A DNA stretch of 64,000 nt, taken from positions 124,001-188,000 of the forward strand of contig CBFFRQ010000032.1 of assembly GCA_965644315.1 (NCBI GenBank), read 5' to 3'. Within the stretch, counting starts at the first letter, position 1; each line of letters starts with the position of its first letter. The notes below the pieces were generated by a model. That model saw nothing but the letters and a program-made list of their open reading frames with translations, did no database searches and had not been told where the DNA came from. This document shows positions 16,921 to 41,400 of the stretch, one piece after another. The position numbers and the translations under genes are program-made. Source of the stretch: Caecitellus pseudoparvulus (taxonomy: Eukaryota; Protista; Bigyra: Bicosoecida).

Positions 16921-18614
16921 ATGCTGCTGCGGGCAGCTTGGCGCTCTGCTTCGCACCACCTTCGCACACGCCGCACTCCACGGCACGCGTCTCTCCTGCA
17001 GCACATCACCAGCAACTTCAGCATGGCCGCAGACGGCGAAATCAAAGTGGAAAAGGCCCACACCCCTCGGGACGTCCTCAGCATTGCCCCCATGATGGAG
17101 GTAACGGACGTGTACTACCGGTGCGCGTTTCAGCGGCGTTTCGGTGCAGCGCCAGGCGAACACGTCATGCACACGCGACGGCGCCCTGTGCGGTGTGTGC
17201 AGGTACTTCATGCGCCTGCTGACCAAGCGCACCCGACTGTACACTGAAATGGTCGTCGAGAACACCATTCACCACACGGACAACATCGACTGGCACCTGC
17301 GCTTCTCGCAGTGCGAGGCGCCCGTCGCGCTGCAGGTGGGAGGCTCGGACCCAGACGCTGTGCGCACCGCTCTGGAGAAGGTGGTGGCTGGCGGCTACGC
17401 GTATGATGAAGTGAACTTGAACTGTGGCTGCCCCAGCGAGCGCGTGGCAACGGTGCGTGCCGCTGCTGCGTTGATCCTGCAGCGCTGTGACCCGCACCGC
17501 ACACGTCACGCACACCCCGCAGAAGAGCTGCTTCGGCGCTCGCCTCATGCTGGAGGCTGCCCGTGTGCGTGACGTCGTGAACAGCATGCAGGCTGGCGTG
17601 GCGGGCAGTGGCATGGAGGTAACGGTGAAGTGCCGGCTGGGCGCAGACCACATGGACTCGTACGCGGAATTCCGCGACTTCATCGCCACTGTCGCGCAGT
17701 CTGGGTGCACGCACTTCATCGTGCATGCCCGCAAGTGCTGGCTGCAGGGCCTGAACCCCAAACAGAACCGCACCGTGCCGCACCTCAAGTACCACTGGGT
17801 GTACCGTGCGGCGGTCGAATTTCCGCACCTGCGTATTTCGCTCAACGGCGGCGTGAACACGTGGCCCGCCATTGACGAGATGCTGCGCCTGCAGCCCGGT
17901 GCAGCGGACGGCACCTCCCCTCATGTGGCGCCGCTACCCCCCTCCGTAGCGGGCGCATACCCCCCTGAAGGAGCTGGCACTGCCGCCGGCTCAGACCGCC
18001 TCATGCGTTGCAAACCGTCCACGGCAGAGCTGGCGAGTCAAGTGGTGGAAGACCCCGTCGCATATGGACAGGGCACGCTGTGGCACGACCCGACCCCTGG
18101 CGCCTCCTCTGCCGATGGCGGAGGGGGCGACCTGTCTCTTGCGCCTGGTCTGCTGGACTCTGTCATGATTGGGCGAGCGGCGTGGCATGACCCGTGGCTG
18201 TTCGCAGACGTGGACCGGCGGCTGTTCGGGCAGGCCAACCCCATGCCACACCGCCGCGCGGCAGTGGAGGCCTTCGTGGCGTGGCTGGAGCGTATTACGG
18301 GCCCCGGCGGCTGGGCCAAAGTGCACTCCTTCAACATCATGGTGAAGCCCATCGTGGCGCTGTTCGCCGGTGTGCGGGGCGGCAAGGCGTACCGCCGCAC
18401 ACTCACCGAGGGCGCCCGCAAGGCCACACACAGCACCATTCGGGACGTCGTCCAAGCTGCCTTGGCACACATCCCCCTGGAGTTCCAAGTGGAACCCCCC
18501 CACGCAGCTGCCATGCCGCCAAAGCCAGAGGCAGAACCAGAGGCAGCAGCCGGCGGGGCGGATGACACAGCCTCGCCCCCCGCGAAACGCCAGGCTGTGG
18601 AGACGTCAGAGTGA
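16921..18614 (+). CDS. dusA: tRNA-dihydrouridine(20/20a) synthase, DusA type (2 introns; alternative start at 17023)
   Basis: LSIAPMMEVTD, LYTEMV, PVALQVGGSDP, YDEVNLNCGCPSERV, CFGARLM, VTVKCRLG, HFIVHARKCWLQGLNPKQNRTVP, VMIGRAAWHDPW. Confidence 0.93.
18489..18614 (+). repeat. Direct repeat copy 1 (native DusA 3' coding end, 126 bp)
   Basis: gtggaaccccccc...gagtga; homologous to 23471-23596 and 28744-28869. Confidence 0.95.
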
Positions 18615-19130
18615 CCCACATCAGACGCAAGGTGGTCTGAGGGGTGCGAGAATGCACTTGCACCGCGCCGCCTGGCGCAGTGTGCCTCTTTCGCCCTCCG
18701 CAGGTGCAGCCTGCAGGCCTTGACATGGAGAGCACCCAGAAGCCAACGGCAGACCCGGTGCAAAAGCGGCAGGAATCTCAGGGGTGTTTTGAAAGCCCTT
18801 TCCGCACAATTCTTGCAGAGATGCCGGACATCCCATCGAGCGTAGCCGGACACCTTTGACATGCCTGCCACCAATTTATACCTCAACATATTCCCACACA
18901 CACCTGTGGTATCACTGAACATCTACACATCCTTGTGCCTGGGGCTTTTTCAGCACTCCTGGCCGCCACAGGTGAGCGTGCACTGGTGCAAGTGCGGAAG
19001 TTGCACCCTCACACGTGAGCTACGACAACGCTTCCCCGGCACACAAATACACTTGCCCACTGCCTCCACCCCACAGGATCCACCTATGTAGTAGTGCTCT
19101 ATTTGATCAGATCTCCTGCCATCCATCGCC

Positions 19131-21597
19131 ATGGTGCGTGGTCGTGGGCCTGGTGCCTTGCTTTCGCCAGCACTTGCGCCAGAGCGTGTCGCCAACACCA
19201 CAGCACACAGCGCCGTTCCCCTCCACCACGCCACAGGAAGCAGTAGCAGGACAACCTATTGAGGGCAGCACAATAGCCACTGCAGGCATCGACGGCGTAC
19301 AGGCTGAGGCGGTGGCGGCATGCTTGCGCAAGATGAAGTGCTTGCCGGACAGCGTCATGGACCACGGCCCAGCACTGCGAGGACTGGCAGCCATTGGGCG
19401 TGGCGAGGCGCCGGCTGCAGGCGACGCCCCATCGGCCATGAGCCTGGTGGAGCTGGAGGCTGCACTGCGTGACGCGGGGAGTGCGCTGTTGGAGCAAGTT
19501 GGGCTGTTGGCGGGGCAGCATGAGCGAGGTGGTGTGTGTGCTGCGCTGCAGTACCTGTCGTTCCGGTGCTTCGCCGCGGTGGATGTGCTGCATCAGGCGG
19601 CATCTGGCGTGGGTGTCGCTGCAGTGCCAGAGGGTGACGCACTGTGGGGCGCCATCGTGAGTGCTTGGGGCAGTGTGCGGGCCGGTGTGAACATGGAGGG
19701 TGCGCTGGCTGACCTGACGCGATGGTGGCAAGGCTTCGAGAGGGCCGATGTGGATGTAGCTGGTGAGGGTGGCCCGCTCACACATGATGCCTGTGGCGAG
19801 GCAGCGACGGATGCGGCTTTGGCTGGCATGCGACAGCAGGCGAAGTGGCTGCGAGGCGAGGCGGCAGGCGAGCTGAGGAGTGAGAGTGCCGCGAAGCACT
19901 TGGAGTGTGCTGCGAGTTCAGTAGAGGAGCTGTGTGGGCTGCTGGGGTGTGGACCGGTGATGAGTGGTCGGAAGGTGAAGGCTGTTCGTGGGCTGGACTT
20001 GTCGGGCGGCGTGGAGTGCCTGAACGGCAAGGATGTGAGTGTGTACAGTGGACGAGTTGAGATCTTGGATGAGGATGTTGATACCGCTGGAGATGTGGAG
20101 CAGTGGGCAGCGAGTGTGGAGGCGGGTGCGACAGCGCTTGCCATGAGTGTTGGAGTCGTGAAGCGTGGCGAAGTAGCTCGCATCGCACATGGACTGCCGC
20201 GGATGGCGCAGACTCCACACAGAGCAGCACTAGCACACAGTACTTCAGCTGGCCGAGCAGATGAGCCGATTGGGGTGAGGAGCAGTGCCATGGTGCAGGT
20301 GCAGTGTGAGGCGGGGTGGCCGTTGAGGGTGTTCCTGGAGGATGAAGCGTGGGGCGATGTCGGGCTGGATGTGAAGCAGCGCGTGGCTGTGAGGGTGCTG
20401 GGTGTGTGTGCTGTGGCGGAGGCGTGTGGGGTGGATGTGGGTGATGTGGGTGTGGGGAGCTTTGTGGTGGTGGGTGTGGGGAGTGGCAGTGTGGGTGATC
20501 TGGTGGGCGCACTGGATGGAGGTGGGGTTGAAGTTTTGCTGAGTGCGTGTGGCGGTGTGTGGAGCACAAGTCGCTCTGATGGTGGCAGCGGTGATCGTGG
20601 TGGCGTGTTGAGTGTGCTGCACGGGGTGCTTGGTGTGGGAGGTGGGGCCTTGGGCGGCGGATCGTGCGTTGTGTCGAGCTTTGTGGGGAGCGGTGAGGGT
20701 GGTGAGCATGGACTGACAAGCGCGTTGGAGTTGTTGGGGCGGGGAGGGAGTGGTTGCTGCATGGGTGCATATGCGATGGCGTGTGAAGGAAGAGGGGGAG
20801 GAGTGGGGCGCCTTCCAGGTGTGGAGAGCGTTGTGCAGAGTGTGCTTGATGGAGAGCAGGCAGCTGATGCGGCAGGTCAGGCGGAGACAGCTGACGCTGA
20901 GGTTGTACCGGCTACAGAGTCGGAGGTTGCTGCCGAGCAAGTCCCTGAGCTGGAGACATTCAGTAAGGAGAACACAGCTGCGTTTGTGGAAGCGTGCAAG
21001 GAGGGTGAGCTTGCCAGAGTGCGCGAGTTGCTTTCATTGACGGGGGATGAGGCAGTGGATGTGCATGTGGAAGGAAATGTTGAGATGTGGCCAAGGGTTT
21101 GCAGACAGGGCCCTGAGGCCGGCTTCCGATGGGCCTGCGCCAGGGGCCACACAGACATCGTGCGTGAGCTGTTGGGTCTGACTGGGGCGCGGGAAGTGAA
21201 TGTGCACGCGGCGGATGAGGATGGACCTGAGGCTGGCTTCCGATGGGCATGCCGCATGGGCCGCACACACATCGTGCGTGAGCTGCTGGGCCTGACTGGG
21301 GCGCGGGAGGTGGATGTGCATGCGGCGGATCGGGGTGGACCTGAGGCTGGCTTCCGAGGCGCAAGCGCCAATGGCTACACAGACGTCGTGCGTGAGCTGC
21401 TGGGCCTGACTGGGGCGCGGGAAGTGGATGTGCACGCCGCGTATAAGTATGGACCTCAGGCTGCCTTCCGATTGGCATGCGGCGCTGGCCATACAGACAT
21501 CGTGCGTGAGCTGCTGGCCCTGACTGGCGTTCGCAGAATCCCAGACACTGTGCGGCAGCAAGCAGCTAAGTTTTCGAGCCTGAAAGACTTGATTTGA
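19131..21597 (+). CDS. Variable ankyrin-repeat receptor-like protein A (N-cap plus 4 x 38-aa repeats, the last merging into a C-cap)
   Basis: ATG(19131)-intron(19134-19236)-exon in frame with ORF 19015..21597. Repeats GPEAGFRxACxxGHTDIVRELLGLTGAREVDVHAADxx at 21109, 21223, 21337, 21451 (114-bp period). Confidence 0.85.
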
Positions 21598-21825
21598 CCC
21601 CAGGCCCCAAGCACGGGCCAATGCATCACGCGCCAAACCTGGCCCCCACGTCAGGCCAGCACACCCGCCACACCTCCATACCAGCATACCCGTCCCTCCT
21701 CCACACCCGAACAAACCACACTTCAATCCACCACACGCAACTCAACAACACACCTCAACACCATCCCCACATCTCCCGCTCCCACACATGCATTGCACTC
21801 TCACACCTGCACACACCAACTCCTC

Positions 21826-23470
21826 TCACTCCTCCCCCGCACGCTTCCTGCACTTCCCACCACCACCTCGCAGCACCTTCAACTTGGCCACGCGCTTCGC
21901 CACGTGGCGCTTCTTCGCCTGTGCCTTCCGACTCCGGCGTGCAGCAGCTGCTGCCGGGTTCGCCACCGCCTCCTGCGCCAATTGCTTCGCCCGCCGCTCC
22001 TTCGCCGCCGCCCTGGCCTGCCGCTCGCCGTTGTGCGCCGTCAGGAACACATCTGCACCCATGGCAGCCTGCACCGCCTCCATGACCTCCGACGCCAAGC
22101 CACCTGCCTCCGCTGCAGCGGCCGCCTGCTGGCCTTGTTCCGACCAAGATGGCGCATCGGCCAGGCGGGGGTCGCTGGCCACGTGCTCTGCCGCCTGCAC
22201 AGTGTGGAACACTGCCCGCGCCACCGGCACCACGTAGCGCTGCAGGCCCGCCTGGAGCACCTGCCCAGCCATGGCCCCGAACACGTTCAGCGCCGTGGTG
22301 GCCGCCGGCCCGCCCTTGTGCACTGCCGTGTTGCTGAGGCGCTGCAGCAGCCAGAACAGCGGGTCACGCGCACCACCGCCGTCGTCGTCTTGGGCAGTGT
22401 GTGTGGGGGGCGAGCTGTCCTGCTGCACCGCCTTGCCGCCCACCACCTCCATGCCACCCACAAGCAGGGTGCACTTGCTGGCCAAGCGAGCCGTGCGCTG
22501 GGCAAGGTGGGGCGAGATGGTGTTGCGGGAGCTGGGCGGGGGCGTGGCGTACAGCCCCACCGCCGTGAACAGAAGCACCGGTGCCAAAGCCGTGCCCTGC
22601 TCCCTACTCAGCGTACCGTCCGCCAGCTGCACACAGGCTGCCCGGGCCAGGGCGAACAGGCGCTCATCCTCAGCCAGCCACGCCACCACGCCAGGCGGTG
22701 GGGGGCAGCTCCCCACGCTCGCCACTGCCGCGGTGTTCAAGACGGCGCCCAGCCACCTGGCTGCTGCCGCCAGCACCCACGCGTGAGGGAACACCATGAT
22801 GTCGATCAGGGCATCCAGAGATGTCCACAGCGCACTGTGAAGTGTGGTGATGGTGGTGGCGTCTGACTCTTGTGCCTTCCCTGACTTGCGCCGCCGCTTC
22901 GTGCCGCTGGCAGGCGTACCACCACTGCCACTCCGAACACCGGCCGCTGCCTCGCTCAGCACACGGGGATGTGCCTCCCACAGACGCTGCAGGAGGGTGC
23001 AGGCGTAGTTCGCCGTATCCCACGGCAGGGCTGCGGCAGCCTTGCGGGCCTGCGCCTGAGCCGCACGCTACGTAGCCACGGCAGGCGTCACGATACGCCC
23101 CCACCTGTCCACATCACCGTCACACCTGCCATCACTGTCGTCGCCCTCCAGCTTCCCCCCGCCACTCCACTCCACTCGGCACGGCACGGGCAGTGCCAGG
23201 CGCACTGGCTTGCCCGGACCCACTCGCCGCACCCAGCAACGCCAGACTGCCCCCCCCTACCACCTCACCCTCCACGTTGCTCCCATCGCCATCGCCATCA
23301 TTTGCCGCTGCGGCATCCTCCTCCAGGTGCTGGGCGTGCCGCATGGCTGCCGAGGCAGCGTCACTCGCCTGCGCCTCCTGCACGCCCTCAGGTACAGGCG
23401 CCAGGGCTGACCCATCAGTCCGCCCTTTCCCTCACATGTCGTGCAGTCTTCGCTGTTGGGTAGACGCTTT
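21826..23470 (-). pseudogene. UTP20: 5'-truncated UTP20 (small-subunit processome) C-terminal fragment, copy 1
   Basis: PHAWVLAAAARWLG and EAVQAAMGADVF...ERRAKQLAQEAVANPAAAAARRSRKAQAKKR resemble the UTP20 C-terminus. In-frame TAG near 23069 where copy 2 has CGG; the fragment starts abruptly at the repeat junction. Confidence 0.7.
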
Positions 23471-23596
23471 GTGGAGCCCCCCCACGCAGCTGCCATGCCG
23501 CCAAAGGCAGAGGCAGAGGCAGAGGCAGCAGCTGGCGGGGCGGATGACACGGCTTCGCCCCCCGCGAAACGCCAGGCTGTCGAGACGTCTGAGTGA
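23471..23596 (+). repeat. Direct repeat copy 2 (DusA 3' end duplicate)
   Basis: Encodes VEPPHAAAMPPKAEAEAEAAAGGADDTASPPAKRQAVETSE* with no indels. Confidence 0.95.
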
Positions 23597-24113
23597 CCCA
23601 CATCGGAAGCAAGATGGTCTGACGGGTGCGAGAATGCACTGGCACAACGCCGCCTGGAGCAGTGTGCCTCTTGCAAGCTGCGAAGGTGTTCCCCACATGC
23701 AGGTCTTGACATGGAGAGCACCCAGAAGCTAACGGCAGACCCGTTGCATGTGCAGCAGGAATCTCAAGGGTGTCCTGCAAGCTCTTTACGCATTTTTGCT
23801 GAGATGCCAGACACTTGGTCGAGCGGAGCCGGACACCTTTGAAATGCCTGCCACCAATTTACACCTCAACGCATTCCCACACACACCTGTGGTATCACTG
23901 AACATCTACACATCCTTGTGCCTGGCGTCTTGTCTTTACTCCTGGCCGCCACAGGTTAGCGTGCACTGGTGCAAGTGCGGAAGTTGCACCCTCGCACGTC
24001 AACTGCGACAACGCTTCCCTGACACACAAACACACCTACCCACTGCCAGCTCACCACAGGAGTCAGATTCACAGCACTGTCATACCTGATCAGACCCCCT
24101 GCCATCCATCGCC

Positions 24114-26913
24114 ATGGTACGTGGGCGTGAGCATGGTGCCTGGCTTTCGCCAGCACTTGCGCCAGAGCGTGTCGCCCACACCACAGCACAGAGCGCCCTG
24201 CCCCCCACCACCACAACAGGCAGCAGCCACAGGACAACCTATTGAGGGCAGCACAATAGCCACTGCAGGCATCGACGTCACACAGGCTGAGGGGGTGGCG
24301 GCATGCTTGGGCAAGATGAAGTGCTTGCCAGGCCGCGCCATGGCCCACGGCCCAGCACTGCGAGGACTGGCAGCCATTGGGCGTGGCGAGGCGCCGGCTG
24401 CAGGCGACGCCCCATCGGCCATGAGCCTGGTGGAGCTGGAGGCTGCACTGCGTGATGCGGGGAGTGCGCTGTTGGAGCAAGTTGGGCTGTTGGCGGGGCA
24501 GCGTGAGCGAGGTGGTGTGTGTGCTGCGCTGCAATACCTGTCGTTCCGGTGCTTCGCCGCGGTGGATGTGCTGCATCAGGCGGCATCTGGTGTGAGTGTC
24601 GATGCAGTGCCGGAGGGTGACGCACTTTGGGGCGCCATTGTTGGTGCTTGGGGCAGTGTGCGGGCCGGTGTGAATATGGAGGGTGCGCTGGCTGACCTGA
24701 CGCGATGGTGGCAAGGCTTCGAGAGGGCCGATGTGGATGTAGCTGGTGAGGGTGGCCCAGTCACACATGGTGCTGGTGGTGAGGCGGCGACGGATGCGGC
24801 TTTGGCTGGCATGCGTCAACAGGCTGAGTGGCTGCGAGGCGAGGCGGCAGGCGATCTGACGAGTGAGAGTGCCGCGAAGCACTTGGAGTGTGCTGCGAGT
24901 TCAGTAGAGGAGCTGTGTGGGCAGTTGGGGTGTGCGCCGGTGATGAGCGGTCGGAAGGTGAGGGCTGTGGGTGGGTTGGACTTGTCGGGTGGCATGGGGT
25001 GCCTGAACGGCAAGGATGTGAGTGTGTACAGTGGACGGGTTGAGATCGTGGATGAAGATATCGATAGAGCTGAGGATGTGGAGCAGTGGGCGGCAAGTGT
25101 GGAGGCGGGTGTGAGGGCGCTTACCACGAGTGTTGGCGCCGTGAAGCGTGGCGAAGCGGCTCGCATTGCCAAAGGACTGCCACGGATGGCACAGACTCCA
25201 CGCAAGGCAGCGTTGAATCACATCTGTGGTGGTGGTCGAGCTGATGAGCCGGTTGGCGAGAGAAGCAGTGTCACAGTGCAGGTGCAGTGTGAGGCGGGTT
25301 GGCCGCTGAGGGTGTTCCTGGAGGATGAAGCGTGGGGCGATGTTGGGCTGGAGGTGAAGCAGCGCGTGGCTGTGAGGGTGCTGGGTGTGTGTGCTGTGGC
25401 GGAGGCGTGTGGAGTGAGTCTGAATGGTGTGGGTGTGGGGAGCTTTGTGGTTGTGGGTGTGAGGAGTGGCGGTGTGGGTGATCTGTTGGGGGCACTGGAT
25501 AGGGGTGGGATTGAGGTGGTGTTGAGTGCATGTGGCCGTGTGTGGAGTACAGGTAGCTCTGATGGTGAGAGTGGTGCTGGTAAGGGTAGTGGTGTGTTGA
25601 GTGTGCTGCGTGAGGTGCTTGGTGTCGGAGGCGGTGCGTTGGGTGGCGGCTCGGGCGTTGGGTCGCTGTCTGTGGGGAGCGGTGAGGGTGGTGAGCATGC
25701 ATTGTCGAGTGCGTTGGGGGTGTTGGGGCGGGGAGGGAGTGGTTGCTGCATGGGTGCTTATGCGATGGCGTGTGGGGGGCTTGGGGGTGGAGTGGGGCGC
25801 TTGTCGGGTGTGGAGAGTGCTGTGCGGAGGGTGCCAGATGGAGAGCAGGCAGCCGGTGCGGCAGGTCAGGCGCAGGCAGCCGAAGCTGCGGCATCAGCTG
25901 GAGAATCGGACCCAGCCCCTGAGGTGGAGAAATTTAGAGAAGAGAACACTGCTGAGTTTGTAGAAGCGTGTAAGGAGGGTAAACTTGTGAGAGTGCAGGA
26001 GCTGCTTGCGTTGAGGGGGGACGAGGCAGTGGATGTGCACGCAGATGGATTCGTTTCGACCGGACCATTTCGCAGTAGTACAGGGCCAGAGGCTGCTTTC
26101 CGATGGGCATGTGTGAATACTCACATAGATGTTGTGCGTGAGCTGTTGGGCCTGACTGGGGCGCGGGAGGTGGATGTGCACGCTGCGGATGGGGCTGGTC
26201 GTGAGGCCGCCTTCCGATTCGCATGCCACAGAGGCAATATAGATGTTGTGCGTGAGCTGCTAGCCCTCACTGGGGCGCGGGAAGTGGACGTGCATGCGGC
26301 GGCTTGGGGCGGGCCTGAAGCTGCCTTTCGGTATGCATGCCGTTGGGGCCACATCGACACTGTGCGTGAGCTGCTGGCCCTGACTGAAGCGCGGGAAGTG
26401 GATGTGCATGCTGCGGATGAGCATGGACCTGAAGCCGCCTTCCGACACGCATGTGCCAGTGGCCACACAGACATCGTGCGTGAGCTGCTGGCGCTGACTG
26501 GGGCACGTGCAGTGGATGTGCACGCGGCGGACGACATTGGGCCTGAGGCTGCCTTTCGACTGGCATGCACCTGGGGTCATACAGACATCGTGCGAGAGCT
26601 GCTGGCTCTCAGTGGGGCGCGGGCAGTGGATGTGCATGCGGCGGATCGCGCTGGACATGAGGCCGCCTTCCGATGTGCATGCGCCAATGGCCGCATATCC
26701 ATCGTCCGTGAGCTGCTGGCCCTCACTGGGGCGCGGGAAGTGGATGTGCACGTGGCGGCATACGGGGGATCAGAGGCCGCCTTCCAGTACGCATGCCACT
26801 ATGGCCACACAGACACCGTGCGTGAGCTGTTGGTCCTCACTGGAGATCGCAGGATCTCAGACAGCATGAGACAGCGAGCCGCCAAGTTTGAGAGCTTGAG
26901 AGACTTGATCTGA
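24114..26913 (+). CDS. Variable ankyrin-repeat receptor-like protein B (N-cap plus 7 x 38-aa repeats, the last merging into a C-cap)
   Basis: ATG(24114)-intron(24117-24219)-exon in frame with ORF 24121..26913. Repeats at 26083, 26197, 26311, 26425, 26539, 26653, 26767. Confidence 0.87.
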
Positions 26914-27047: not shown

Positions 27048-28743
27048 TCACACCTGCAAAACATCTCCCTCCACACCCCACACCAACGCCTCGCACTCCT
27101 CCCGCACCCGCTTCCTGCCCTTCCCACCACCGCCTCGCAGCACCTTCAGCTTGTCCATGCGCTTCGCCACGTGGCGCTTCTTCGCCTGTGCCTTCCGACT
27201 CCGGCGTGCTGCACCTGCTGCCGGGTTCACCACCGCCTCCTGCGCCACGTGCTTCGCCCGCCGCTCCTTCGCCGCCGCCCTGGCCCGCCGCTCGCCGTTG
27301 TACGCCGTCAGGAACACATCTGCACCCATGGCAGCCTGCACCGCCTCCATGATCTCCCACACCAAGGCCCCTGCCTCTGCTGCAGCGGCCGCCTGCTGTG
27401 CCTGCTCTGACCAGGATGGCGCGTCGGCCAGGCGGGGGTCGCTGGCCAACTGCTCTGCCGCCTGCACAGTGCGGAACACTGCCCGTGCCACCGGCACCAC
27501 GTAACGCTACCGGTCCGCCTGCGGCAAGTGCCCAGCCATGGCCCCGAACACGTTCAGCGCCGTGGTAGCCGCTGGCCCACCCTTGTGCACTGCCGTGTTG
27601 CTGAGGCGCTGCAGCAGCCAGAACAGCGGATCACGCGCACCACCGCCGTCATCTTGGGCAGTGTGTGTGGGGGGCGAGCTGTCCCGCTGCACTGCCTTGC
27701 CGCCCACCACCTCCACGCCACCCACGAGCAGGGTGGACTTGCCGGCCAAGCGAGCCGTGCGCTCGGCGAGGTGGGGCGGGATGATGTTGCGGGAGCTGGG
27801 CGGCGTCGTGGCGAACAGCCCCACCGCCGTGAACAGCAGCACCGGCGCCAGAGCCGTGCCCTGCTCCCTGCTCAGCGTACCGTCCGCCTGCTGCACACAG
27901 GCTGCCCGAGCCAGGGCGAACAGGTGCTCATCCCCAGCCAGCCACGCCGTCACACCAGGTGGTGGGGGGCAGCTCCCCACGCTCGCCACTGCCACGGTGT
28001 TCAGGACGGCGCCCAGCCACCTGGCTGCTGCAGCCCGCACTCACACGTGACGAAACACCATGATGTCGGTCAGAGCATCCAGAGACGTCCACAGCGCATT
28101 TTGCAACGTGGCCGCAGTGGTGGCGTCTGCCTCTTGCGCCTTCCCAGCCTTGCGCCACCGCTTTGTGCCGCTGGCAGGCATCACGCCACTGCCACTGCCA
28201 CAGGCACCGGCCGCTGCCTCACTCAGCACACGGGGATGTACCCCCCACAGGCGCTGCAGGAGGGTGCAGGCGTAGTACGCCGTGTCCCACGGCAGGGCTG
28301 CGGCAGCCCTGCGGGCCTGCGCCTGAGCGGCACGCCGCGCAGCCACGGCAGGCGTCACCACATGCCCCCACCTGTCCACATCCCCATCACACCTGCCATC
28401 ACAGTCATCATCCTCCACCTCCCACCCGCCACCCGCCACTCCACTCGGCACGGCACGGGCAGTGTCAGGCGCACTTGCCTGCCCCGACCCACTCGCCGCA
28501 CCCAGCAACGCCAGACTGCCCCCCCCCTACCACCTCACCCTCCACGTTGCTCCCATCACCATCATCATCACCATCCGCCGTCGCGGCGTCCTCCTCCAAG
28601 TGCTGGGCGTGCCGCATGGCTGACGAGGCAGCGTCACTCGCCTGCACCGCTTGTACGCCATCACGTGCAGGCGCCAGGGCTGACCCATCAGTCCGCCCTT
28701 TCCCTCACATGTCGTGCAGTCTTCGCTGTTGGGTAGACGCTTT
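27048..28743 (-). pseudogene. UTP20: 5'-truncated UTP20 C-terminal fragment, copy 2
   Basis: Paralogue of copy 1, broken into three ORFs (28041..28508, 27507..28040, 27048..27500). TGG>TGA at 28041 and a stop/frameshift near 27505. Confidence 0.7.
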
Positions 28744-28869
28744 GTGGAGCCCCCCAACGCAGCTGCCATGCCGCCAAAGGCAGAGGCAGAGGCAGAGGCC
28801 GCAGCTGGCACAACGGATGACACGGCTTCGCCCCCCGCGAAACGCCAGGCTGTGGAGGCGTCTGCGTGA
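28744..28869 (+). repeat. Direct repeat copy 3 (DusA 3' end duplicate)
   Basis: Encodes VEPPNAAAMPPKAEAEAEAAAGTTDDTASPPAKRQAVEASA* with no indels; downstream sequence diverges into unique DNA. Confidence 0.93.
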
Positions 28870-29099
28870 CCCACATCGGAAGCAAAGCTTAAGCATCTTG
28901 GGGAATGCACTCAGACTGCGCCGCGTGTGGCGAACTGCTCCTTCGCCAGGAATGGACGCGGCGCCAGGGCCCACCACATTCCCAGCGCACAGTCAATTTC
29001 CGAACGACAGCAACAGACACAGCCAACCTGTGCAACTTTGCAGCGCCATTTTGTGACAGCCTGACCAGCCTGTACCGCAGGTTGCTCGCGTCTCAAGTC

Positions 29100-32415: not shown

Positions 32416-35400
32416 TCACAGCCCCGCGTCATCCTCCTCGTCGCTCTGCACTTCCGCACTGCTGCCAGGCTGCTCCCCTGACGTTTGCTCCACTGCCACG
32501 TCCCCCGCACTGGCAAAGAAGGGGAAGGCGGACGCCAAGGCAGCCAGCCCGTCTGCCGCTGCGCCTGTGGTGCTGGAATCCAGGGAGCTGTTCGCGGCGA
32601 ACTGCCGCTGCACCCGCCGCCGCGCGAGGAACCCGCGCACAGAGCTCTGCACCCTGGACACGAGCATGTGGCGCACCCACCGCGCCATGACAGTCTCACG
32701 TTGCATGCGCTCCACCGCGCTCAGGGCGTCAGGCCCGAACTTCCACCTGGACAGCAGCGTCAGCAGCGTGCCAAACGGCACTTGCAAGCTGCCCTCCGGT
32801 CGGGCAGCCACTGCAGCTGCAGCTGCAGCGTGCACGTGCTCCAAGCGCACTGCGTCCAGGGCGGCGATTTGCTGCGAAGGGAGGCGTATGGGTGGTGGGG
32901 GAGAGCTGTGTGAGCAGGGGGTGTGGGGCGAGCGGCGTTTGCGTGGGTTGGCGGCAGCACGCACAGCATCCACCTCCTCGGGGGTTCGCAGACTGCCAAT
33001 TTCACGCAGCACGCGCTTTGCCACCCCCATTGCCTCCACTCGGCTGCGCATGATAAATGAAGGCGCATGGTGCTGTCGCTTGGGCGTGCGCTGCCCTGCC
33101 TTGCGCAGGCGGCTCGCAGTGCCCGCGCCTGCCGCCTGGCTCTCAAACCGCACGCGAGGAGGAATCTCCACAGTGGGAGCAGGCTGCGCGCCATCTTCGG
33201 CCTTGTCCGAAGCAGGGCTTGCTGGGGCAGAGGCTGCCGGGCGTGGTGCGGCGTCGGGGCCTTGGTGCCCTCCTGCAGCTGGCAACGCTCCCGCAGGTTT
33301 GGACTTTTCTGCGCCGACGAGGGGAGCAGCTCCCGAAGGCGGCACCATGCTGGCAGGCAGCACGGCGGCATCGCTTGCACTGGCCTGGTCCTGTCGCTTC
33401 CCCAACGGCGGCTGCACTTGCTTGCTGAGAATAGCGCGGCGCCGCAGCAGCAGCTGGCGTGCCTGTCGCAGGGTGCGAATGCGACGGCGCACTTCAAAGA
33501 CAACTGCGGAAGTGCAAAGCGGCGAACGCGTGCATGGCAAACTCGGGGAGGAGAAGTGCCCCGCTTCAAGTGGGTGGATGCAGGGGGTCACGTACCGTTC
33601 TGTTCAAAGGCCATGCCGTGCACTTCAGTGCGGAGGATGGACCACCACCACCGCCGCTGCAGGCCGCGTGCGAGGAAGCGCTGGAACGGGGACTGCCCAA
33701 AACTCACAAAGGCGGCCTCCAGGAACGCCTTGCTGACATCCTTGTCATCAGACTTGCTGCCGGCCCTGCTGTCCGCCGGCCCTGCACCGCCAAGCGTTGA
33801 CGACATGCCCGGGTCAAATGCAGATCGGCCACGGGCGTGGCCGCCGCCTGTAGACGCCCCAGCCACGCTGTCCGAGCCTGTCGTCAAGTGTGGTGGAGCC
33901 TGGGGCAGGGACGCCTCTGTGGACTGCCACATGGCCGAGTCCTTGCGAGTGGCGAGGTAGAACGGCTTGCCCAGCTTGGCGTCCATTTCTGCCAAGCGTG
34001 CAAGCAGCGCCGCCCGTTCCTGGCGGCGCTGCAAGCGCTCAAGCTTATCTTGACCCGCTGTAAAACGTGGAAGGCGTGTGATTGGTGCTTAGGAGTGGGA
34101 GCACTGTTTCCAGCGGCGAGGGACACGCACCGAGGCGGGTCAAGAAAGGGCGCAGTTTTCGCAGCGGCAGCACGCCTTGGAACTTGGAGTCCATGCCCCG
34201 GCTGGTCCACGCTTTCTTATACTTCTGAATGTCCGCAAAGGACATGTCCGAGCTTTGCTCGATTTCAACCTGCGATGCGTGGAAGAGGAGGGTGGTCCAG
34301 CGGATACGGTACACTCCGGGACCAGGGTCGCGTGCGCTTTCCGTGCTGCAACGTACAGCGTACAAGAAGTTCTCCAGCACTGAGCCGAGGTAAAAGGCGA
34401 GAATGACAAGCGTCACGATAAGGGTGAATGCGAAGAAGTACACGTTTGTAACGCTGGTCACGCTCTGCGTATCCGCGTAAATGGACGGCCACTCGCCTCC
34501 TGCAAAACGGGAGAGGGGAAACGGGGACAGCATTGTTCGACTCGCATGCAGGCAATGGCAGCGATAACTAAGACCAGTGAAGCGATGCGGCGGAGCAAGA
34601 CGCACCTGTGGCCATGCGCAGAAGAATAAAGAGGCTGCTGCCAAAGGTGCGGAAGTGCGCGTGGCGGTTGATGGCCTCCAGAGGAGCAACACTGCCCGCG
34701 AATTCGACGGCGCTAGCCAATGCCCCAGGCGCGGCCTGGCACGTGGACACCTCCAGCACGCCTGCTACGGCTGGGGGCACCGTGGCACCAGTGGTGGGGT
34801 GTGTGCTGCCAGGCTCAAGCAGAGTCCCACCCACGGTGTTGGCAGACTGTGCCTCCTGCACAAGTTCAGCCCATGTGAAGTTCCCTGCAGCCACGCTGGC
34901 CGCAGCGGCTTCTGGCGTGAACAGAAACACAGACTGCAGCTCCCGCGTGGCTTGCTGCAGGGAAGCGTCATACAGAGCCCCCATGCTGAGAAGGGATGTG
35001 AAAGTGGCCTCCTGCGCGTCCTCGCCTGGCTCGGGGTAGTACGCCACCCGGTCACCCAACCGAGTGGATTGGGAGCCGATGCGGGCGGGGGGCAGCAGGT
35101 GCAGCGGGTCGCCCAGGCTCACCCCGAAGCAGGCCGAGTTGTTGGTGACAGAGGGCTGCAGGTTGAAGGCTAGGACTGGGTCGGGGTGCGGCACAGACCA
35201 CTGGTGCACATGGCGACGTGAGGCGCCCAGGTCCCCGAACAGCTCCATGCCCATGACAGCAAAGACGAAGAGGAAGAGGAAGAGGACTGCCGTGACATTC
35301 AGCAGGGACCCCAGGGACACGACGGCCGTGTCAAAGAGGATGCGCAGGGAGGGGATCTTGCGGAACACGCGCGCCAGCCGAGCGACGCGGAACACCCGCG

Positions 35401-38400
35401 CAGCCTCCACAGAGAAGGGGAACGTCGCCGGCATGAAGTCGAAGATGAGGGAGCCGGCGACGAGGACGAAGTCGAAGGTGTCCCATGCGTCGCTGAAGTA
35501 CGCCTCCAGGCCCAGGCCCAGCCACTTGATGAGCACTTCTGCCGCGAAAATGGCCAGGAACACGCGGTTCAGGATCAGGATAGCCTGCGCAAAGTCGGCT
35601 GAAATGGGGTAGTGGTTCATCATCAGCACGATGACGTTCAGGATGATGCAGGCGGTGATGAAGCCATGGAACCAAGGGTGCTTGCTCAGCAAGTTCGCGT
35701 TGTCGCGGGATTTGTACCAGGACAGCGCACAGCACCGCCGTGTGCGCACCGCGCAGTAGCACGTGCAGCAGTCCTTGCAGCACACTGCGCAGCTGCTGCT
35801 GACGTCGGAAGCGCAGGCTGCCAGGGAAGGGCAGGACTCTGCCGTTGCAGTCGTGGTGGACTTCTTGAAGCAGGGTGGCGCGATGAGCGCGCCCTCCTTC
35901 AAAATGCGCCGGTTGCGAATGCGGTCTTTCCGCGCTTGCTTCTTGCGCAGTGCGGCAGCTGCCAGGGGCGACAATGATGAAGTGGGCGTGCGGGACATGC
36001 TGGCTTGGGGTGCGCCGCTCTTGCTCGTGTCCACACGCAAGGAGGCGTGCTGGGAGCCCTCCATTTCGGCGCCGTTACTCGAAGACGCAGCACGCGCGTG
36101 TGCGGCCTGCAGGTACGCCTGGCGAAGTTCCGCCTCCACATCGTCATCTTCAGTGTCGGAGGAAGTGCCGGAGGATGAGTCGGTGGAGGAGGTCGTGGAG
36201 GACGTGTCCCCCTGCCCCGTGCGAATGATGTGTGCGGCAGTACGGGAGGATGGCGTGGCCCCAGACACCTCCCCGAACACGTCCACTGCACTCTCCTCGT
36301 CGCCGCTGGCTGCTGCGGGCACAGCTGCGATGTCTGTGATGCGGGGTTCACTGGCAGCCTTTGCGGCAGAACCCAGGTGTCGAGGTGCGGCCGCTGAGAA
36401 CAACGAGTCCATGCCACTGCCATCCACGCTGACGCTGGTGTCTGACAGAACCAAGTCCCGGACTGACGCGCCGGCTTGGGGGACGTAGCGGGAGCCAGGC
36501 ACTCCAGCGTTGCCCTTTTGCACGTCAAGGAGGCTGGGGGAGAACACAAACGTGCCTGCCAAGTTGCTGCCTTTGTGTGTGTGGGAGCTGGGCTCTTGGC
36601 GCGTGCCCAGGCGGCTGCTCAAGGCCGCCTTGCGACCTGCACGCTGCAGCAGCCGTGCTCCTGCTGTCATGGGGCGCCCAGGAGCTGCAAACATCTGCCC
36701 TGCCTGCTGGCCACTTCCCTCACCCCCATCTTCAGCGTGCGACACCTCATCCTGGGCCTCCAGCTCCACGCCAGCTACCACAGCTGCCACGCGCCGGAAG
36801 CCGTTTGACACGTAGTTCCGCACACCTGGCAGCAAGGTTGCCAAATTGGGCACACCACGGCCTGCGGCGAGTGGCACGTCTGCGGCTGCTGCTCGTCTGG
36901 GCAGAGCCAGCACAGCTCTGCTGGGTGACGGCCGGAGAGGCTTTGGGGCAGGGCTGTGAGCCGCCTCCGACGGGGGCACGGCAACCAAGTCGGCAGCACA
37001 TGCCTGAGCGTTCTCCGCACCAGGCATCGGCGACCCAACAACTGGGGATGGCTCAGGTGCGGTGGTGCTGGGTGTTTCGGTCGCTACGCGCTTGCGCTTT
37101 GGACGCTTGAAGTTGACGGCAGCAGCAGCCAGCGGCTCCGGCACCGGCGCTTCGAAGTCAGCACGCAGCAGGCGGCGTTGCTGAGGAGGGGAAAAGAGCA
37201 GCACGAAGCGCTGCAAGTTCAGCCACTTGCGCTGCTTGCTGGTCATGTCGGCAGACCCTGACACCCTGGCCAGGTGCTCAAGCACGATGCCCAGCACCAA
37301 CTGCAGCAAGATGAAGCTGACCACAAACACGAACACAATGAAGAACAGCGCGAAGAAGGGGGAGTTGTTCTTTATCGGGCCCTTGTTTGCGTCGTCTATG
37401 TCCATGGCACGGAACATCACTGCGAAAGCGAGAAGACGGCGGGGCAGTGCGGAAGCAGGCATCGTTGTGCACGGCAACGGCGGCTTTGGGGTGGGCGTGA
37501 CGCACCTGGTGCCCAGGTTTCCAACGTCACAATGCGGGCAAGAGTGCCCAGGGAAGAGGGCATAGAGTCGAAGTTTGCCGTGGGGACCTGCCACGCCCGC
37601 AGGGCCAACTCGCCGTCCTCCGCCACAAACACACCCCGACACAGCTCCCGGGTGGAGACAGACTCGTCTGAGCAGTTGCCCATGGCATCTGCAAACAGGT
37701 CGCGAGCCATGACAGAGAAGGCGAACATGGTCAAGGTGCACAGCAGAGCCGCATTAACAATTTGAAGCCTGTGAGAGCGGGGGGAGGGCAGGTGCAAATG
37801 TATCGCAGCCAAGGCCAAAGTCAAGGCGTCAACACGCACCCGCCCGACCACATGGCAATGACGAGGCGTCGAGTGGCGGCGAACCTGTCCATGAGGCGCA
37901 GTGGTCGCAGGCAGCGGCCGATGCGCAGGAGGCGGAGCCACAGTGGCTCGCTTGTGCCTTCCGCGACCAGCCCCCGATCCCCGCCCTGTGTCGTGCCTGG
38001 CAAGGAAAGCAGGTCGCCGTTGCCGCCAAAGGCTCGACCAGTGTACGAAGTCACAAGCAGTACCTCTGCGATGGAGACGAAGGCGATGAAGGCGTCGAAG
38101 GCGTTCCAGCCGACGGAGAAATACCGCGTGCCGCCCAGCGCGAACATGCGCAGCGCCATTTCCAACCCGAACAGCACCGCGAACACCAAGTCCATCACGG
38201 CGATCCAGCGTGGCTGGTCCAGGGAAGCCTGGTAGTCGTCGAACGCCAGCAAGATGGAAGACAGCACAATGATGCCTGCGACAGTGTACTCAAAGGCGGG
38301 CATTTTGATGATGCGGAGTGCGAGCGCTCGGGCAGGGTGCTGCAGCGAGCAAGCACACCGGCCACAGCACACAAACTCAGAGGGCTCTGCGAAACAAGTA

Positions 38401-41400
38401 GGGGCGGGGAAGGTGCGCAGTGAGGGAGCTGTCAGCGCCTGCGACCCGGGTGGGGCACGTACGAACTCGCAGCGCCCTGTCAGTGCTGGCCGCGGGGCGT
38501 GCAACGGCGCTGGCGGTGTTCTGGGTGGGGGCAGTTCCCGCCCCCCCAGGGCGCTTGCCTGCCATGGCTTTTGCAGTCAAACTTCGAGGCACACTGCTGC
38601 TGTCGCTGAGTTGCTCCTGAGCAGGCAGGGCGGTGCCCGCGTGCCCGCCCTCATCCGCTGCGTCGCTGCCTGGTGCTGCGTCACGTGCTGCAGCTTCCGG
38701 CAACGGCTCGCCTGGAGCCAGGAGCACGGGTGCCCCCTGGAAAATGGGCCCCCCCAGCACAAGGGTCTGTCGAGGGACGCCTGTGTCATCCAGCACGCCG
38801 GGGGCGTCGCTGAGGGTAGGGGCAATGCGGGTGTCCGAGCCTTCGTCCTCCTCATCCACACGCTCCAAGTGATCCCTGCGCTTGTCCCCGCCCAGCACTT
38901 GCGCAGCCGCCAAGCGCTTCGACGCGGCAGCGAGACGCGCGGTGCGTACTGCCTGTGCAGCCGCTGCTCGCTGCCGCAACGCCCACTCCCGCTCATGCTG
39001 ACACAGCGCCAGGACCAGAGGCTGCAGTGCGGTGGCATCATCCACCAGCGGGGGGGGCGCCCGCGTCACACGGGTGGAGGCGGTCATGGGGCGTGCGCCA
39101 GTGCTGGTGGGCGGCCGGCGTGCCGACAGGGGCAAGCGCAGAGGCTCTGCCGCCAGCACGACTGCCGCTGCGGCGCCTGCAGCGTGGTGCTCTGCGGGTG
39201 TGTTGGCCAGCCACGCATCGCCCTCGAGCTGCATGACACGTGTGGCGGCAGACGCCACCGCCTCTGGGTTGGGAGCCTGGTCCTCCTCGTCGTCATCGGT
39301 GTCCTCACTGCTGCTCCATGAGGCATCGCTGACCGCGTCGATGGGTGGGCTGCCTTGGTCGCTGGCAGGTCGCACCTGCCGAGCCTTGTCCACCTCTTCC
39401 TGCGCCATGGCCAAGTTCAGTGTGGCGCTGGTGCCGACGCCTGGCATGGGAGAGGCCTGCGCTGCCAGCAGATCGCCAGCCGCCGCGTCGAACTTGGCAG
39501 CCAGAGAGTCCATGTCCAGGCCGGGCAGGGTGGGGGACGTGGCGGGCGCTGGCTGGCGAGGGGAGGGCGGGATGTTCACCGTGGGTACAGGGGATGCCAG
39601 CAGTGAAGCTGGTGAGCCTGATGCGGCGCTGTGTCGGCTCTGGCGACGTGCCTCGTGCCGCTGGCGTCGCTGGCGCCGTTTGGCACGCAACCGCGCCTCA
39701 AACCGGCGCTGCAGCCGATCAGCCTTGGCTCGCTCAGCCACCTCCTTCTCCGTGCGGCCGCTGCGTGTCGCAGAAGCCTGGGCGCGCTGAGTGAGCAGCG
39801 CCAGAGCAGGGAGGCGTGTTCGACTGGGCAGGTGAAACGCAGGAGACGCTGCGATGGGGCGCCTGGCTCGTAGGGCCCCCACAGCACTGTGAAGAGCTGG
39901 CGAGCCCAAAGACTTGACGGGTGACGGGGACGCCGCCACGCGCCAGGAGCCGGCAGGCTTTGGAGGAGCCGCTTTGTGTTCTGGCTCGTCGACACCCTGC
40001 GTGTGTTCAGTGTGCCCAGGTGGTCCTGGTGCCGACGCGCCGCTCGCGGCAGGCCCTGTCGCCTCCTCCTGCTCAGCGGGAGCTGTGGCGGGTGCCGGGG
40101 CAGTCTCAGCAGTCATGTGTGCACTGTCCTCGTCCGGAATCTCCACGAAGCGGTCGTAGGGGTTGTGCGTCGTCGTGCTCATGGCAGCGAGCTCGTCCTG
40201 CGTCCCCACCGCGTCGAGCGTCACGTCGCGGTACAGGCCGCGCAGGCGCTCGCGGCGGTGGGCGAGGTGGCGCACGAGGGCGAAGGCGCGACGAGACATC
40301 GCGCCCAAGTACACTTCCGCCAGCACCCGCCCCAGTGCGACCATGTCCACGTCTTCTTCTCCCTCGGGGCTGCGTGCACGGTCTGGATCGGAGGTGAAGG
40401 AGGAGAACCGCGCTTCGCCAGGCGGCACACTGCCTGGCTTGCTGTCGGGCGCGCCGACGGGGTCAGGCGGCGCAGTGGGCACTGACGCCGCTGCGTGGCC
40501 CAACATGCCTGCGGCATGCAGCAGGTCGCGCAGAATGCCGGTCTCCTCCTGCGAGAGGGCAGCGCCTTCCCGCACTGCCAGCTGATGCAACAACGCCACC
40601 TGCTCTGCCGTCTGCACACATGCCAAGTTCTTCGCCGCTGTACCGCGAAGCTGGTCCAAGTCGGTTTCCAGGGACGCCTGCTGGTCGTCCTCAGGGATTG
40701 ACGCATCCATCTCGACTTCTGCTCGCTCGTGTGCCGTGCGAGCCATGTGTGCGGCGACGCCCGCCGCCGTCTGCAGGCGGTCCATGCCCACAGTTATGGC
40801 GCGTAGAAAGCCGATGAGGGTGGTGCGCTTGCGCTTGAGGGTTTCCAGGCGCACCTCCCGCTGAAAGCGCACGAGGCGGCGGAACTTGCTCATCTGCTGC
40901 GCGTACCGGTCTTCCTCTGCGTGCTCGAAGTTCTCCAGGATCACGGCCACGTACCAGTTCGTGAGCACGAAGCCTGAGAAGAAAATCCACACAATGATGT
41001 ACGGCACTGCTGCCCACGCGGCTGAAGACTGCATGCAGTTGTAAAAGGCGTTGGACCAGTTGTCCAGCGTGATGAGCACGAACAGCGTGATGGTGGACTC
41101 GAAGAAGGTGTCAAAGCGCAGGCGTGGATCAGCCAGCTCCTCCTCGTCGGCAGGGAAGCGCCCACCAAACAGCTGCATGCCAAGCAGCGCATACACTGCA
41201 GTTGTGAAGATAGTGAGGCCAATCAGGTTCAGCAACGCATGTGTGGACTTGAAGGCGGTGCTGAGCAGCTCCTGCATGCCGGGGATGCGCAGCATGAGCC
41301 GCACCAGGCGCAGCACTCGGAAAATCAGCACTGCTCGCACAATGTCCAGGAGCTGGAAGTTTGTGTCTGACGCAGTGAGCGCAAGGATGTTGAAAGGCAG

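Follow-up and report, generated by a model that had tools for sequence, protein, structure and literature searches.

Two paralogues in a marine stramenopile protist belong to a large family with hypervariable ankyrin arrays and are candidate recognition receptors

To our knowledge, how free-living protists recognize viruses and other non-self is largely unknown. Elsewhere, conserved solenoid frameworks with a diversified binding face and variation in copy number are found in the leucine-rich repeats of plant NLRs and in the VLRs of lampreys, and in RNase L ankyrin repeats sense the ligand for an antiviral effector. The closest natural precedent for the genes described here is provided by fungal NLRs (Podospora nwd/het-e; Dyrka et al. 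2014) with internally conserved and positively selected ANK, TPR or WD repeats, for which the criterion is an internal repeat identity of >85% (PMC4986451). In the fungal ankyrin repeats about five positions are positively selected, in the inner helix and hairpin on the concave face, and the fungal repeat NLRs include heterokaryon-incompatibility genes (PMC4986451). The protist genes resemble them in having near-identical repeat arrays, repeat-number polymorphism, large lineage-specific families, few repeat positions under positive selection, and repeat sensors joined to varied N-terminal modules, but they differ in having a helical region and a predicted pseudokinase in place of NACHT or NB-ARC, a unit of 38 rather than 33 aa, and a stramenopile host.

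The window, a stretch of 64,000 nucleotides, contains two intronless neighbouring paralogues of this marine protist, in the open reading frames at 19015-21597 (+) and 24121-26913 (+). The ORF list and alignments of the genes with each other and with metagenomic homologues place gene 1 at 19333-21597 (+), encoding ~754 aa counted from the first ATG (MKCLP...), and gene 2 at 24316-26913 (+), encoding ~865 aa from MKCLP. The start codon assigned to gene 1 (19333) is provisional, its mechanical ORF beginning at 19015; that of gene 2 begins at 24121, with an ATG upstream of MKCLP at 24133. Each gene is preceded by a conserved element of ~230 bp on the plus strand (18770-19000 5' of gene 1, and 23752-23983 5' of gene 2), a candidate promoter or 5' UTR; a DNA search of the organism's own genome gave 41 matches to it, mostly to query positions 282-512 at 71-87% identity and adjoining module genes, and the element is common to roughly 38 family loci. 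On the minus strand at 21829-22959 lies the 3' part of a passenger gene, co-duplicated with gene 1, and a second copy downstream of gene 2 (27096-28226, minus strand) is interrupted by one TGA and one TAG. Contig C43 carries the passenger in full, as an open frame of 4210 aa, and the window fragment is 90% identical to that copy.

With Tandem Repeats Finder, a period of 114 is found over 21112-21527 (3.6 copies) and again over 26122-26843 (6.3 copies), and the units, read in register, start at 21109, 21223, 21337 and 21451 in gene 1 and at 26083, 26197, 26311, 26425, 26539, 26653 and 26767 in gene 2. The initial annotation had described 11 repeats of 114 bp (38 aa) in two paralogues, and its count of four plus seven units holds, the last of each merging into the C-cap; the residues that it gave for the turn and for the slots following FR and AC match the translation exactly, and the N-cap (FVEACKEG...) and C-cap tail (...KF.SL.DLI) are present in both proteins. 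Gene 1 encodes an N-cap ankyrin unit with a variable loop (20983-21108, +), three internal units of 38 aa each (21109-21450, +), and a final unit running into the C-cap tail and stop codon (21451-21597, +). In gene 2 the N-cap unit (25957-26082, +) includes a low-confidence loop at 26050-26076 (pLDDT <50 at residues 41-49 of ANK model mfabd8f1a6f06), and is followed by six internal units of 38 aa each (26083-26766, +), which are supported by AlphaFold2, Foldseek and PDB sequence matches, and by the final unit with its C-cap tail and stop codon (26767-26913, +). Within the window genes, the repeats have an internal identity of 0.72-0.77 when all 38 positions are counted, which is under the 85% of the fungal arrays, and of 0.82-0.87 at the framework, with the five variable positions described below set aside.

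Pfam Ank_2 matches were obtained with E-values of 6.7e-10 and 2.3e-32 (39.8 and 111.8 bits, cut-off 27.3), and AlphaFold2 models the gene 2 array with a pLDDT of 92 and two helices per unit. A Foldseek search with this model recovers FEM1B, DARPins and ankyrin-1 (E 1e-8, TM 0.6-0.66). The profile match together with the predicted helix-turn-helix/hairpin solenoid identifies the units as ankyrin repeats, yet two canonical features are departed from, the period being 38 aa rather than 33 and EAAF replacing TPLH. The unit is an atypical ankyrin subtype, and these departures do not exclude its membership.

Where the initial annotation treated the proteins as ankyrin-only, the arrays turn out to be just the C-terminal third, each preceded by a module of ~500 aa composed of a helical region and a protein-kinase fold without catalytic motifs. 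In the AlphaFold2 model of gene 2 (m8b1ee2b53c1f; mean pLDDT 80, pTM 0.81) residues 1-205 (24316-24930, +) are all-helical, with helices from H11-22 to H184-204, and residues ~204-490 (24925-25785, +) adopt the kinase fold. The gene 1 counterparts are an all-helical region of ~205 aa (19333-19945, +), colinear with gene 2 residues 1-205, and a kinase-fold domain (19942-20800, +) whose coordinates are approximate, being carried over from the gene 2 alignment and the fold matches of the gene 2 model. Those fold matches show the central domain as bilobal, as in kinases, but no invariant Lys is present among 17 homologues, HRD is absent after predicted helix E, and DFG is absent before the activation segment; there is an invariant Cys in ...SACG. 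We predict that the domain is a catalytically dead pseudokinase.

The MLKL pseudokinase is nominally the best structural match to this domain, within 1 Z unit of the ordinary kinases ALK, ITK and IRAK4. MLKL, a necroptosis executioner activated through phosphorylation by RIPK3, consists of a four-helix bundle and a pseudokinase and, unlike the protist proteins, has no repeat sensor. No match linked the helical region to a four-helix bundle, full-length MLKL (4btf) appears in the Foldseek results with an rmsd of 23 Å, and Pfam and profile searches found no sequence homology to MLKL. No match to the helical region was found in the Atlas feature search or among PDB sequences; Pfam reports ankyrin families only, with no match to NACHT, NB-ARC or TIR, PADLOC reports nothing for the module, and no transmembrane segment was found. 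Ankyrin repeats and a kinase or pseudokinase also share one chain in RNase L, RIPK4/ANKK1 and ILK. In RNase L and ILK, however, the ankyrin repeats come first, the reverse of the order in the protist proteins, which also lack the RNase domain of RNase L, and all of these are single-copy genes with conserved repeats whereas the protist family is multigene and hypervariable. We found no published description of an architecture that joins a helical region, a pseudokinase and ankyrin repeats.

The variation is confined to a few positions of the unit. When the nine internal units of the window are compared, the 33 framework positions have an amino-acid identity of 0.82 and the five variable ones of 0.12, a pattern far beyond chance; framework pN is 0.096 against a pS of 0.363, so that the framework is kept at the protein level as third codon positions drift. 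A sample of 329 units from 31 loci in the same genome bears out the earlier description of a nearly fixed framework with hypervariable slots, and the variation is not spread evenly over the framework: only positions 8, 11, 12, 37 and 38 have an entropy above 2.9 bits, and the values for the most tightly conserved framework positions stay under 0.5 bits. Identity at the variable positions is 0.07-0.13, and the 329 units carry 278 distinct five-residue signatures. Ankyrin-only genes, of which there are many in the genome with arrays of up to 44 units, have the same variable positions as the receptor genes, showing that the hypervariability is not bound to the receptor architecture.

An excess of dN over dS at the predicted surface, on which the initial annotation had staked its reading, is seen at these five slots and nowhere else, with all figures obtained by pairwise counting. 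In a young subfamily the ratio of pN to pooled pS is 1.9-3.1 at exactly codons 8, 11, 12, 37 and 38, with bootstrap intervals above 1, and is <=1 at all 33 other codons. For 117 independent unit pairs, picked on half of the framework codons with pS measured on the held-out half, variable-codon pN (0.343) exceeds held-out pS (0.215; Wilcoxon p 2.6e-8), and the variable codons have the same pS (0.212) as the framework, which speaks against the variable codons merely being older. As a calibration, the N-terminal domains of the two genes have diverged by a dS of 0.25, similar to framework dS, with a dN/dS of 0.37.

Repeat arrays undergo concerted evolution, and the five positions could in principle be unconstrained surface set in a framework homogenised by gene conversion and unequal crossing-over, with no adaptive diversification. 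The approximately equal likeness of any two subfamily units within (pS 0.18) and between (0.22) arrays agrees with this, as do the three youngest array pairs (95-97% identical and possibly alleles), whose ratio of 0.14-0.63 shows no excess over 1. However, neutral sites are expected at dN = dS whereas the observed values are 1.6 to 3 times dS; conversion would homogenise the variable codons along with their flanks, but unit pairs with framework pS <0.05 still show a variable-codon pN of 0.40; synonymous change is equal in the two classes of codon; and family-wide the framework protein is conserved (pN 0.13) although synonymous sites are saturated (pS 0.58). We regard purely neutral variation as highly unlikely. 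The extreme localisation of the changes, five codons between nearly invariant DNA, is also what targeted mutagenesis by a diversity-generating retroelement or by somatic diversification could produce in place of germline selection, but neither a template/variable repeat pair nor a reverse transcriptase beside the genes is seen in the window, the diversity extends across hundreds of germline units at many loci, and changes in the variable codons affect all three bases without an evident preference for particular bases, making this the most far-fetched of explanations.

The slots recall the engineered DARPins, consensus binders built on the same plan of an N-cap, identical internal modules and a C-cap, and the protist family, with its near-identical internal modules between the two caps, is a natural counterpart. 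DARPins are the best PDB sequence matches of the array (E 3e-27). In the alignment, unit positions 37, 38, 11 and 12 correspond to the DARPin randomised positions 2, 3, 13 and 14 in the numbering of Binz et al. 2003. The proposal that the variable sites are the same as those randomised in DARPin libraries stands for four of the five slots, and four of the six randomised positions (2, 3, 5, 13, 14 and 33) are variable here, but slot 8 aligns with a fixed DARPin framework residue, Leu10, DARPin position 5 is a conserved proline in the protist units, and position 33 shows moderate variation (1.85 bits). The protist units also have EAAF where DARPins have TPLH, and are five residues longer, with one additional residue close to the start of helix 1 and the other four following helix 2. 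Positions 8, 11 and 12 are predicted to form one face of the inner helix, with 37 and 38 at the hairpin tip, and secondary structure, helical periodicity and the DARPin alignment together predict that the variable residues lie on the concave face.

The genome contains ~75 module genes, so the initial annotation's expectation of a sizeable family, which the lack of further members would have overturned, is borne out. The module is almost confined to this lineage, and metagenomic relatives have it joined to SEL1 repeats or a coiled coil instead. Repeat number changes quickly between close paralogues, whose open frames are between 612 and 1607 aa long, with 4 versus 7 units in the window. The receptor genes are near-intact, with a stop in 1 of 83 module matches and in none of the 150 among the ankyrin matches listed, as against 14 of the 46 co-duplicated passenger fragments. 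Nearly all of the 46 passenger copies lie beside receptor genes, and the family expanded through the copying of a cassette of ~5 kb.

The presence of this cassette at >25 loci with its passenger and upstream element, and the clustering of many copies on short contigs or at contig ends, are features that a drive or toxin-antidote family spreading its own cassette might also display. A self/non-self system within the species, for allorecognition or for mating incompatibility like that of the fungal het genes, would likewise have its model in the heterokaryon-incompatibility genes among the fungal repeat NLRs (PMC4986451). The cassette, however, shows no transposase or other mobility gene, its copies are arranged in a way consistent with tandem and segmental duplication, and the youngest, possibly allelic, copies have no excess of surface change, and we consider a selfish or within-species role rather improbable.

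Most known ankyrin arrays and pseudokinases act as scaffolds, and it is conceivable, if unlikely, that the proteins are endogenous scaffolds or adaptors for diversified partners within the cell itself, such as kinases, channels or ubiquitin-ligase substrates, and that the variation reflects sub-functionalisation of paralogues. The substrate adaptor FEM1B is among the best structural matches, Pfam and PADLOC reveal no defence domain, and the ankyrin-only members have an identical pattern. Yet a scaffold family would have to account for ~75 near-identical modules bearing surfaces with so little identity at the variable positions and with dN > dS, for so many distinct signatures, and for fast repeat-number change in a lineage-restricted family; the combination of surface diversity, dN > dS, repeat-number turnover and lineage restriction is typical of conflict genes and not of housekeeping scaffolds.

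A diversifying recognition repertoire, as first proposed for these genes, is supported by the fixed framework, the five hypervariable slots, dN > dS and the large family. The window genes are strong candidates for recognition or immune receptors, and we infer a possible immune-receptor role for the family; that they belong to a ~75-gene germline repertoire of cytosolic single-chain receptors is the reading we lean towards, with some reserve. Like plant NLRs and VLRs they would diversify the face of a solenoid, but with ankyrin repeats where those use LRRs, and there is no sign here of the somatic assembly of VLRs. In such a receptor the hypervariable ankyrin groove would bind diverse, fast-changing ligands, most plausibly viral, bacterial or other non-self proteins, and binding would be relayed to the module of helical region and pseudokinase, whose output would be a signal or an effector activity; the pseudokinase may control the helical domain in the manner of MLKL, whose pseudokinase governs a helical killer domain. 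Units gained or lost, duplication of the cassette and positive selection on the five positions would be the sources of new specificities. A more specific and quite tentative version is that the proteins represent a new class of eukaryotic innate immune receptor, in which viral or bacterial proteins are detected by the hypervariable ankyrin groove and this directly frees an MLKL-like helical executioner kept in check by the pseudokinase of the same chain; the protist would then possess ~75 germline sensor-executioner genes.

The family has the evolutionary marks of receptors in its copy number, clustering, repeat-number change and positive selection on a predicted binding face. If the proposed function is true, stramenopiles would have arrived independently at the solution known from fungal NLR repeats and engineered DARPins, and direct ligand sensing would be coupled to an MLKL-like pseudokinase switch. 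The arrays also constitute a natural library of stable binders based on a 38-residue ankyrin variant, which may be of interest to protein engineers.

The two paralogous genes lie on the forward strand, gene 1 at 19015-21597 (860 aa) and gene 2 at 24121-26913 (930 aa), each within one copy of a tandemly duplicated segment of about 5 kb, in eukaryotic DNA of about 66% GC with long intronless ORFs. Tandem Repeats Finder places arrays with a period of 114 bp at positions 21112-21527 and 26122-26843 of the window; Pfam recognizes ankyrin repeats in them, and in register gene 1 has four units and gene 2 has seven. In both genes an N-cap unit comes first and the final unit merges into a conserved C-terminal tail. 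The initial annotation had described a fixed 38-residue ankyrin framework with hypervariable slots, carried between N- and C-caps in two proteins with four and seven units, and this description is borne out. Translation of the units shows the variable residues listed for both paralogues to be correct, and the nine internal units share 82% identity at the 33 framework positions versus 12% at the five variable positions (8, 11, 12, 37, and 38). Among the window units framework pN is 0.096 versus a pS of 0.363.

The neighbors of the two genes in the window encode a tubulin-tyrosine ligase, voltage-gated-type ion channels, a BPI/LBP-like protein, and a dihydrouridine synthase (ORF at 17487-18614). 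Three direct copies of the end of this last ORF (its 3′ part; 18489-18706, 23471-23688, and 28744-28961) bracket the two 5-kb cassettes, the second copy being 89% and the third 70% identical to the first; the arrangement resembles what unequal crossing-over would leave after a local tandem duplication. GC skew reaches 0.20 at 20001-22000 and 0.35 at 24001-26000, so that G strongly outnumbers C on the receptor coding strand; the neighbors do not share this bias, which is probably compositional, arising from Gly/Val/Ala-rich coding. Two adjoining minus-strand ORFs (34568-37741 and 38377-43143) both contain ion-transport domains and may together make up one multi-domain channel gene that an intron or a frame change interrupts. 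A 437-aa ankyrin protein on the minus strand at 62624-63937 matches the canonical Pfam Ank model, but it appears unrelated to the receptor family, since a model of the 38-aa unit finds no such units in the window outside genes 1 and 2.

The initial annotation read the pattern as a diversifying recognition repertoire and named family size, per-site entropy, and per-site selection as ways of checking it, and all three have been examined. When the organism's own genome (a 30.6-Mb assembly in 215 contigs, with the window on contig C32) was searched in six frames with the gene 2 array, 206 matches emerged from 829 first-look candidates, and none of the 150 matches listed contains a stop. From 30 fetched loci and the window we placed 382 units in register, using G-P-E-A-A-F-R-x-A-C-x-x-G-H as the reference, and 329 of them are both unique and internal; the shortest arrays have a few units and the longest has 44 (in one 1867-aa ORF). 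Shannon entropy among the 329 units exceeds 2.9 bits at positions 8, 11, 12, 37, and 38 only, is below 0.5 bits at the strictest framework positions, and the five variable residues form 278 distinct signatures. Arrays show the same pattern of variation whether or not they are linked to the N-terminal module.

Some genes of the 38-aa unit consist of ankyrin repeats only: four such loci (L045:3260-8860, on contig C54 of the genome G000, together with L046, L047, and L052) have 27 to 44 units behind a leader of just 70-105 aa, with the same five hypervariable positions. Separately, an NCBI protein named YCF1 (P0039, a partial ABC-transporter record from an assembly of the dinoflagellate Symbiodinium sp. 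KB8) is 70% identical to the 38-aa array over a third of the query, which may reflect a fusion, a mis-join, or contamination of the culture by a relative of Caecitellus pseudoparvulus.

Family-wide, pS is about 0.58 and thus saturated while framework pN is 0.13, and it is therefore purifying selection on the protein that holds the framework, not recent copying. Because synonymous sites are saturated, the family-wide dN/dS is uninformative at the variable sites, and these were therefore assessed in a young subfamily and in nearest pairs that are independent of one another; all of the selection figures come from counting methods without a recombination model. In the young subfamily (89 units, pooled pS 0.217) pairwise counting gives pN/pS ratios of 2.8, 3.1, 2.3, 2.0, and 1.9 at positions 8, 11, 12, 37, and 38 respectively, with bootstrap intervals above 1 at all five and a ratio of at most 1 at every other position. 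Even unit pairs with a framework pS below 0.05 still have a variable-codon pN of 0.40. As a guard against bias in the choice of pairs, 117 non-overlapping nearest unit pairs were picked on half of the framework codons and their pS was taken on the other half. Variable-codon pN in these pairs is 0.343 versus a held-out pS of 0.215 and a framework pN of 0.060, with variable pN above held-out pS in 80 pairs and below it in 29 (Wilcoxon p 2.6e-8). The five positions of each unit that are predicted to face the groove thus outpace synonymous sites.

An alternative explanation is that the variable codons are older islands that have escaped homogenization, but this is argued against by the pS within those codons (0.212 in the 117 pairs), which is the same as in the framework. 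Nor is the dS of the array framework unusually low, since the N-terminal domains of genes 1 and 2 differ by a dS of 0.254 (dN/dS 0.37). The three array pairs of most recent origin (95-97% identity) have ratios of 0.14-0.63 from very few changes, and are perhaps alleles.

The AlphaFold2 model of the ankyrin array is a confident solenoid (pLDDT 92, pTM 0.89), in which each unit forms one helix over positions 4-11 and another over 15-22, with a bridging hairpin from 36 to 1. The N-cap loop (26050-26076 in gene 2 and 21067-21108 in gene 1) has a pLDDT below 50 in the gene 2 model. Positions 8, 11, and 12 have i, i+3, i+4 spacing along the inner helix, and the variable part of the array therefore coincides with its predicted binding groove. 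Foldseek matches FEM1B, DARPins, and ankyrin-1, and the top sequence matches among all solved structures are DARPins (E 3e-27). The libraries of the original DARPin design paper reportedly randomize positions 2, 3, 5, 13, 14, and 33. Unit positions 37, 38, 11, and 12 align to DARPin positions 2, 3, 13, and 14, whereas position 8, one helical turn ahead of 11 and 12, aligns to the fixed Leu10, and the family unit has five extra residues, at position 3 and after helix 2. The general layout of DARPins is one of caps, modules, and paratope (PMC8683736).

The array is just the last third of each protein, and neither Pfam, PADLOC, nor the PDB sequences give a match to the approximately 500 residues that precede it. 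This module is nonetheless conserved in 13-15 metagenomic and assembly-derived proteins, in which its partner is a 38-aa ankyrin array, SEL1 repeats (P0007), or a coiled coil (P0010). When 1.84 billion representative proteins were searched exhaustively by profile, only 20 relatives came up, and the module is thus restricted to the lineage of this protist. By its HSP90 the genome belongs among the stramenopiles: the top named matches come from oomycetes and diatoms (73-75% identity), and a match at 99% comes from a metagenome only. An AlphaFold2 model from a 17-sequence alignment (pLDDT 80, pTM 0.81) shows a helical region (residues 1-205), for which an Atlas feature search gave no usable match, followed by a mixed domain with a protein-kinase fold (residues 204-490). 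All of the best 50 structural matches to the latter are kinases; on a second look the first five are MLKL pseudokinases, with ALK, ITK, and IRAK4 within 1 Z unit, and Atlas shape and feature searches likewise point to kinases. The domain has no invariant Lys, no HRD, and no DFG, and the usual criteria therefore class it as a pseudokinase. The receptor proteins have no predicted transmembrane segment, and a literature search for helical-pseudokinase-ankyrin receptors in protists found nothing relevant.

The receptor family, a conserved helical-pseudokinase module joined to an ankyrin array, is real, large, and lineage-restricted. The module has 83 matches in the own genome, of which about 76 cover nearly its whole length, with identities of 34-87%. 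Close paralogues have open frames of 612 to 1607 aa, reflecting very different repeat numbers, and repeat number shifts fast between paralogues. Minus-strand fragments of the 3′ part of a passenger gene lie beside gene 1 (21829-22959) and gene 2 (27096-28226), and 46 fragments of this kind occur with family members throughout the genome. Stops interrupt 14 of these 46 versus only one of the 83 modules, and receptor genes have therefore been kept open while their co-duplicated passengers decay. The intact passenger gene is a 4210-aa open frame beside receptor genes on contig C43 (about 618963-620087), which on this arrangement is likely the source locus of the expansion. In addition, genes 1 and 2 are each preceded by a conserved element of about 230 bp (18770-19000 and 23752-23983) that an own-genome search finds at about 38 family loci with 71-87% identity; it is a candidate for a common promoter or 5′ UTR.

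Among natural systems the fungal NLRs come closest: their ANK, TPR, and WD repeats combine high internal conservation with repeat-number polymorphism, and positive selection acts at about five positions of the concave face (PMC4986451). The receptor family differs from them in its 38-aa unit, in its host lineage, and in the absence of the NOD domain that fungal NLRs contain. We infer that the groove of the ankyrin array would recognize a ligand and that the N-terminal module would signal or execute, with a receptor role that is probably in biotic conflict; the family may represent a candidate MLKL-like sensor-executioner.
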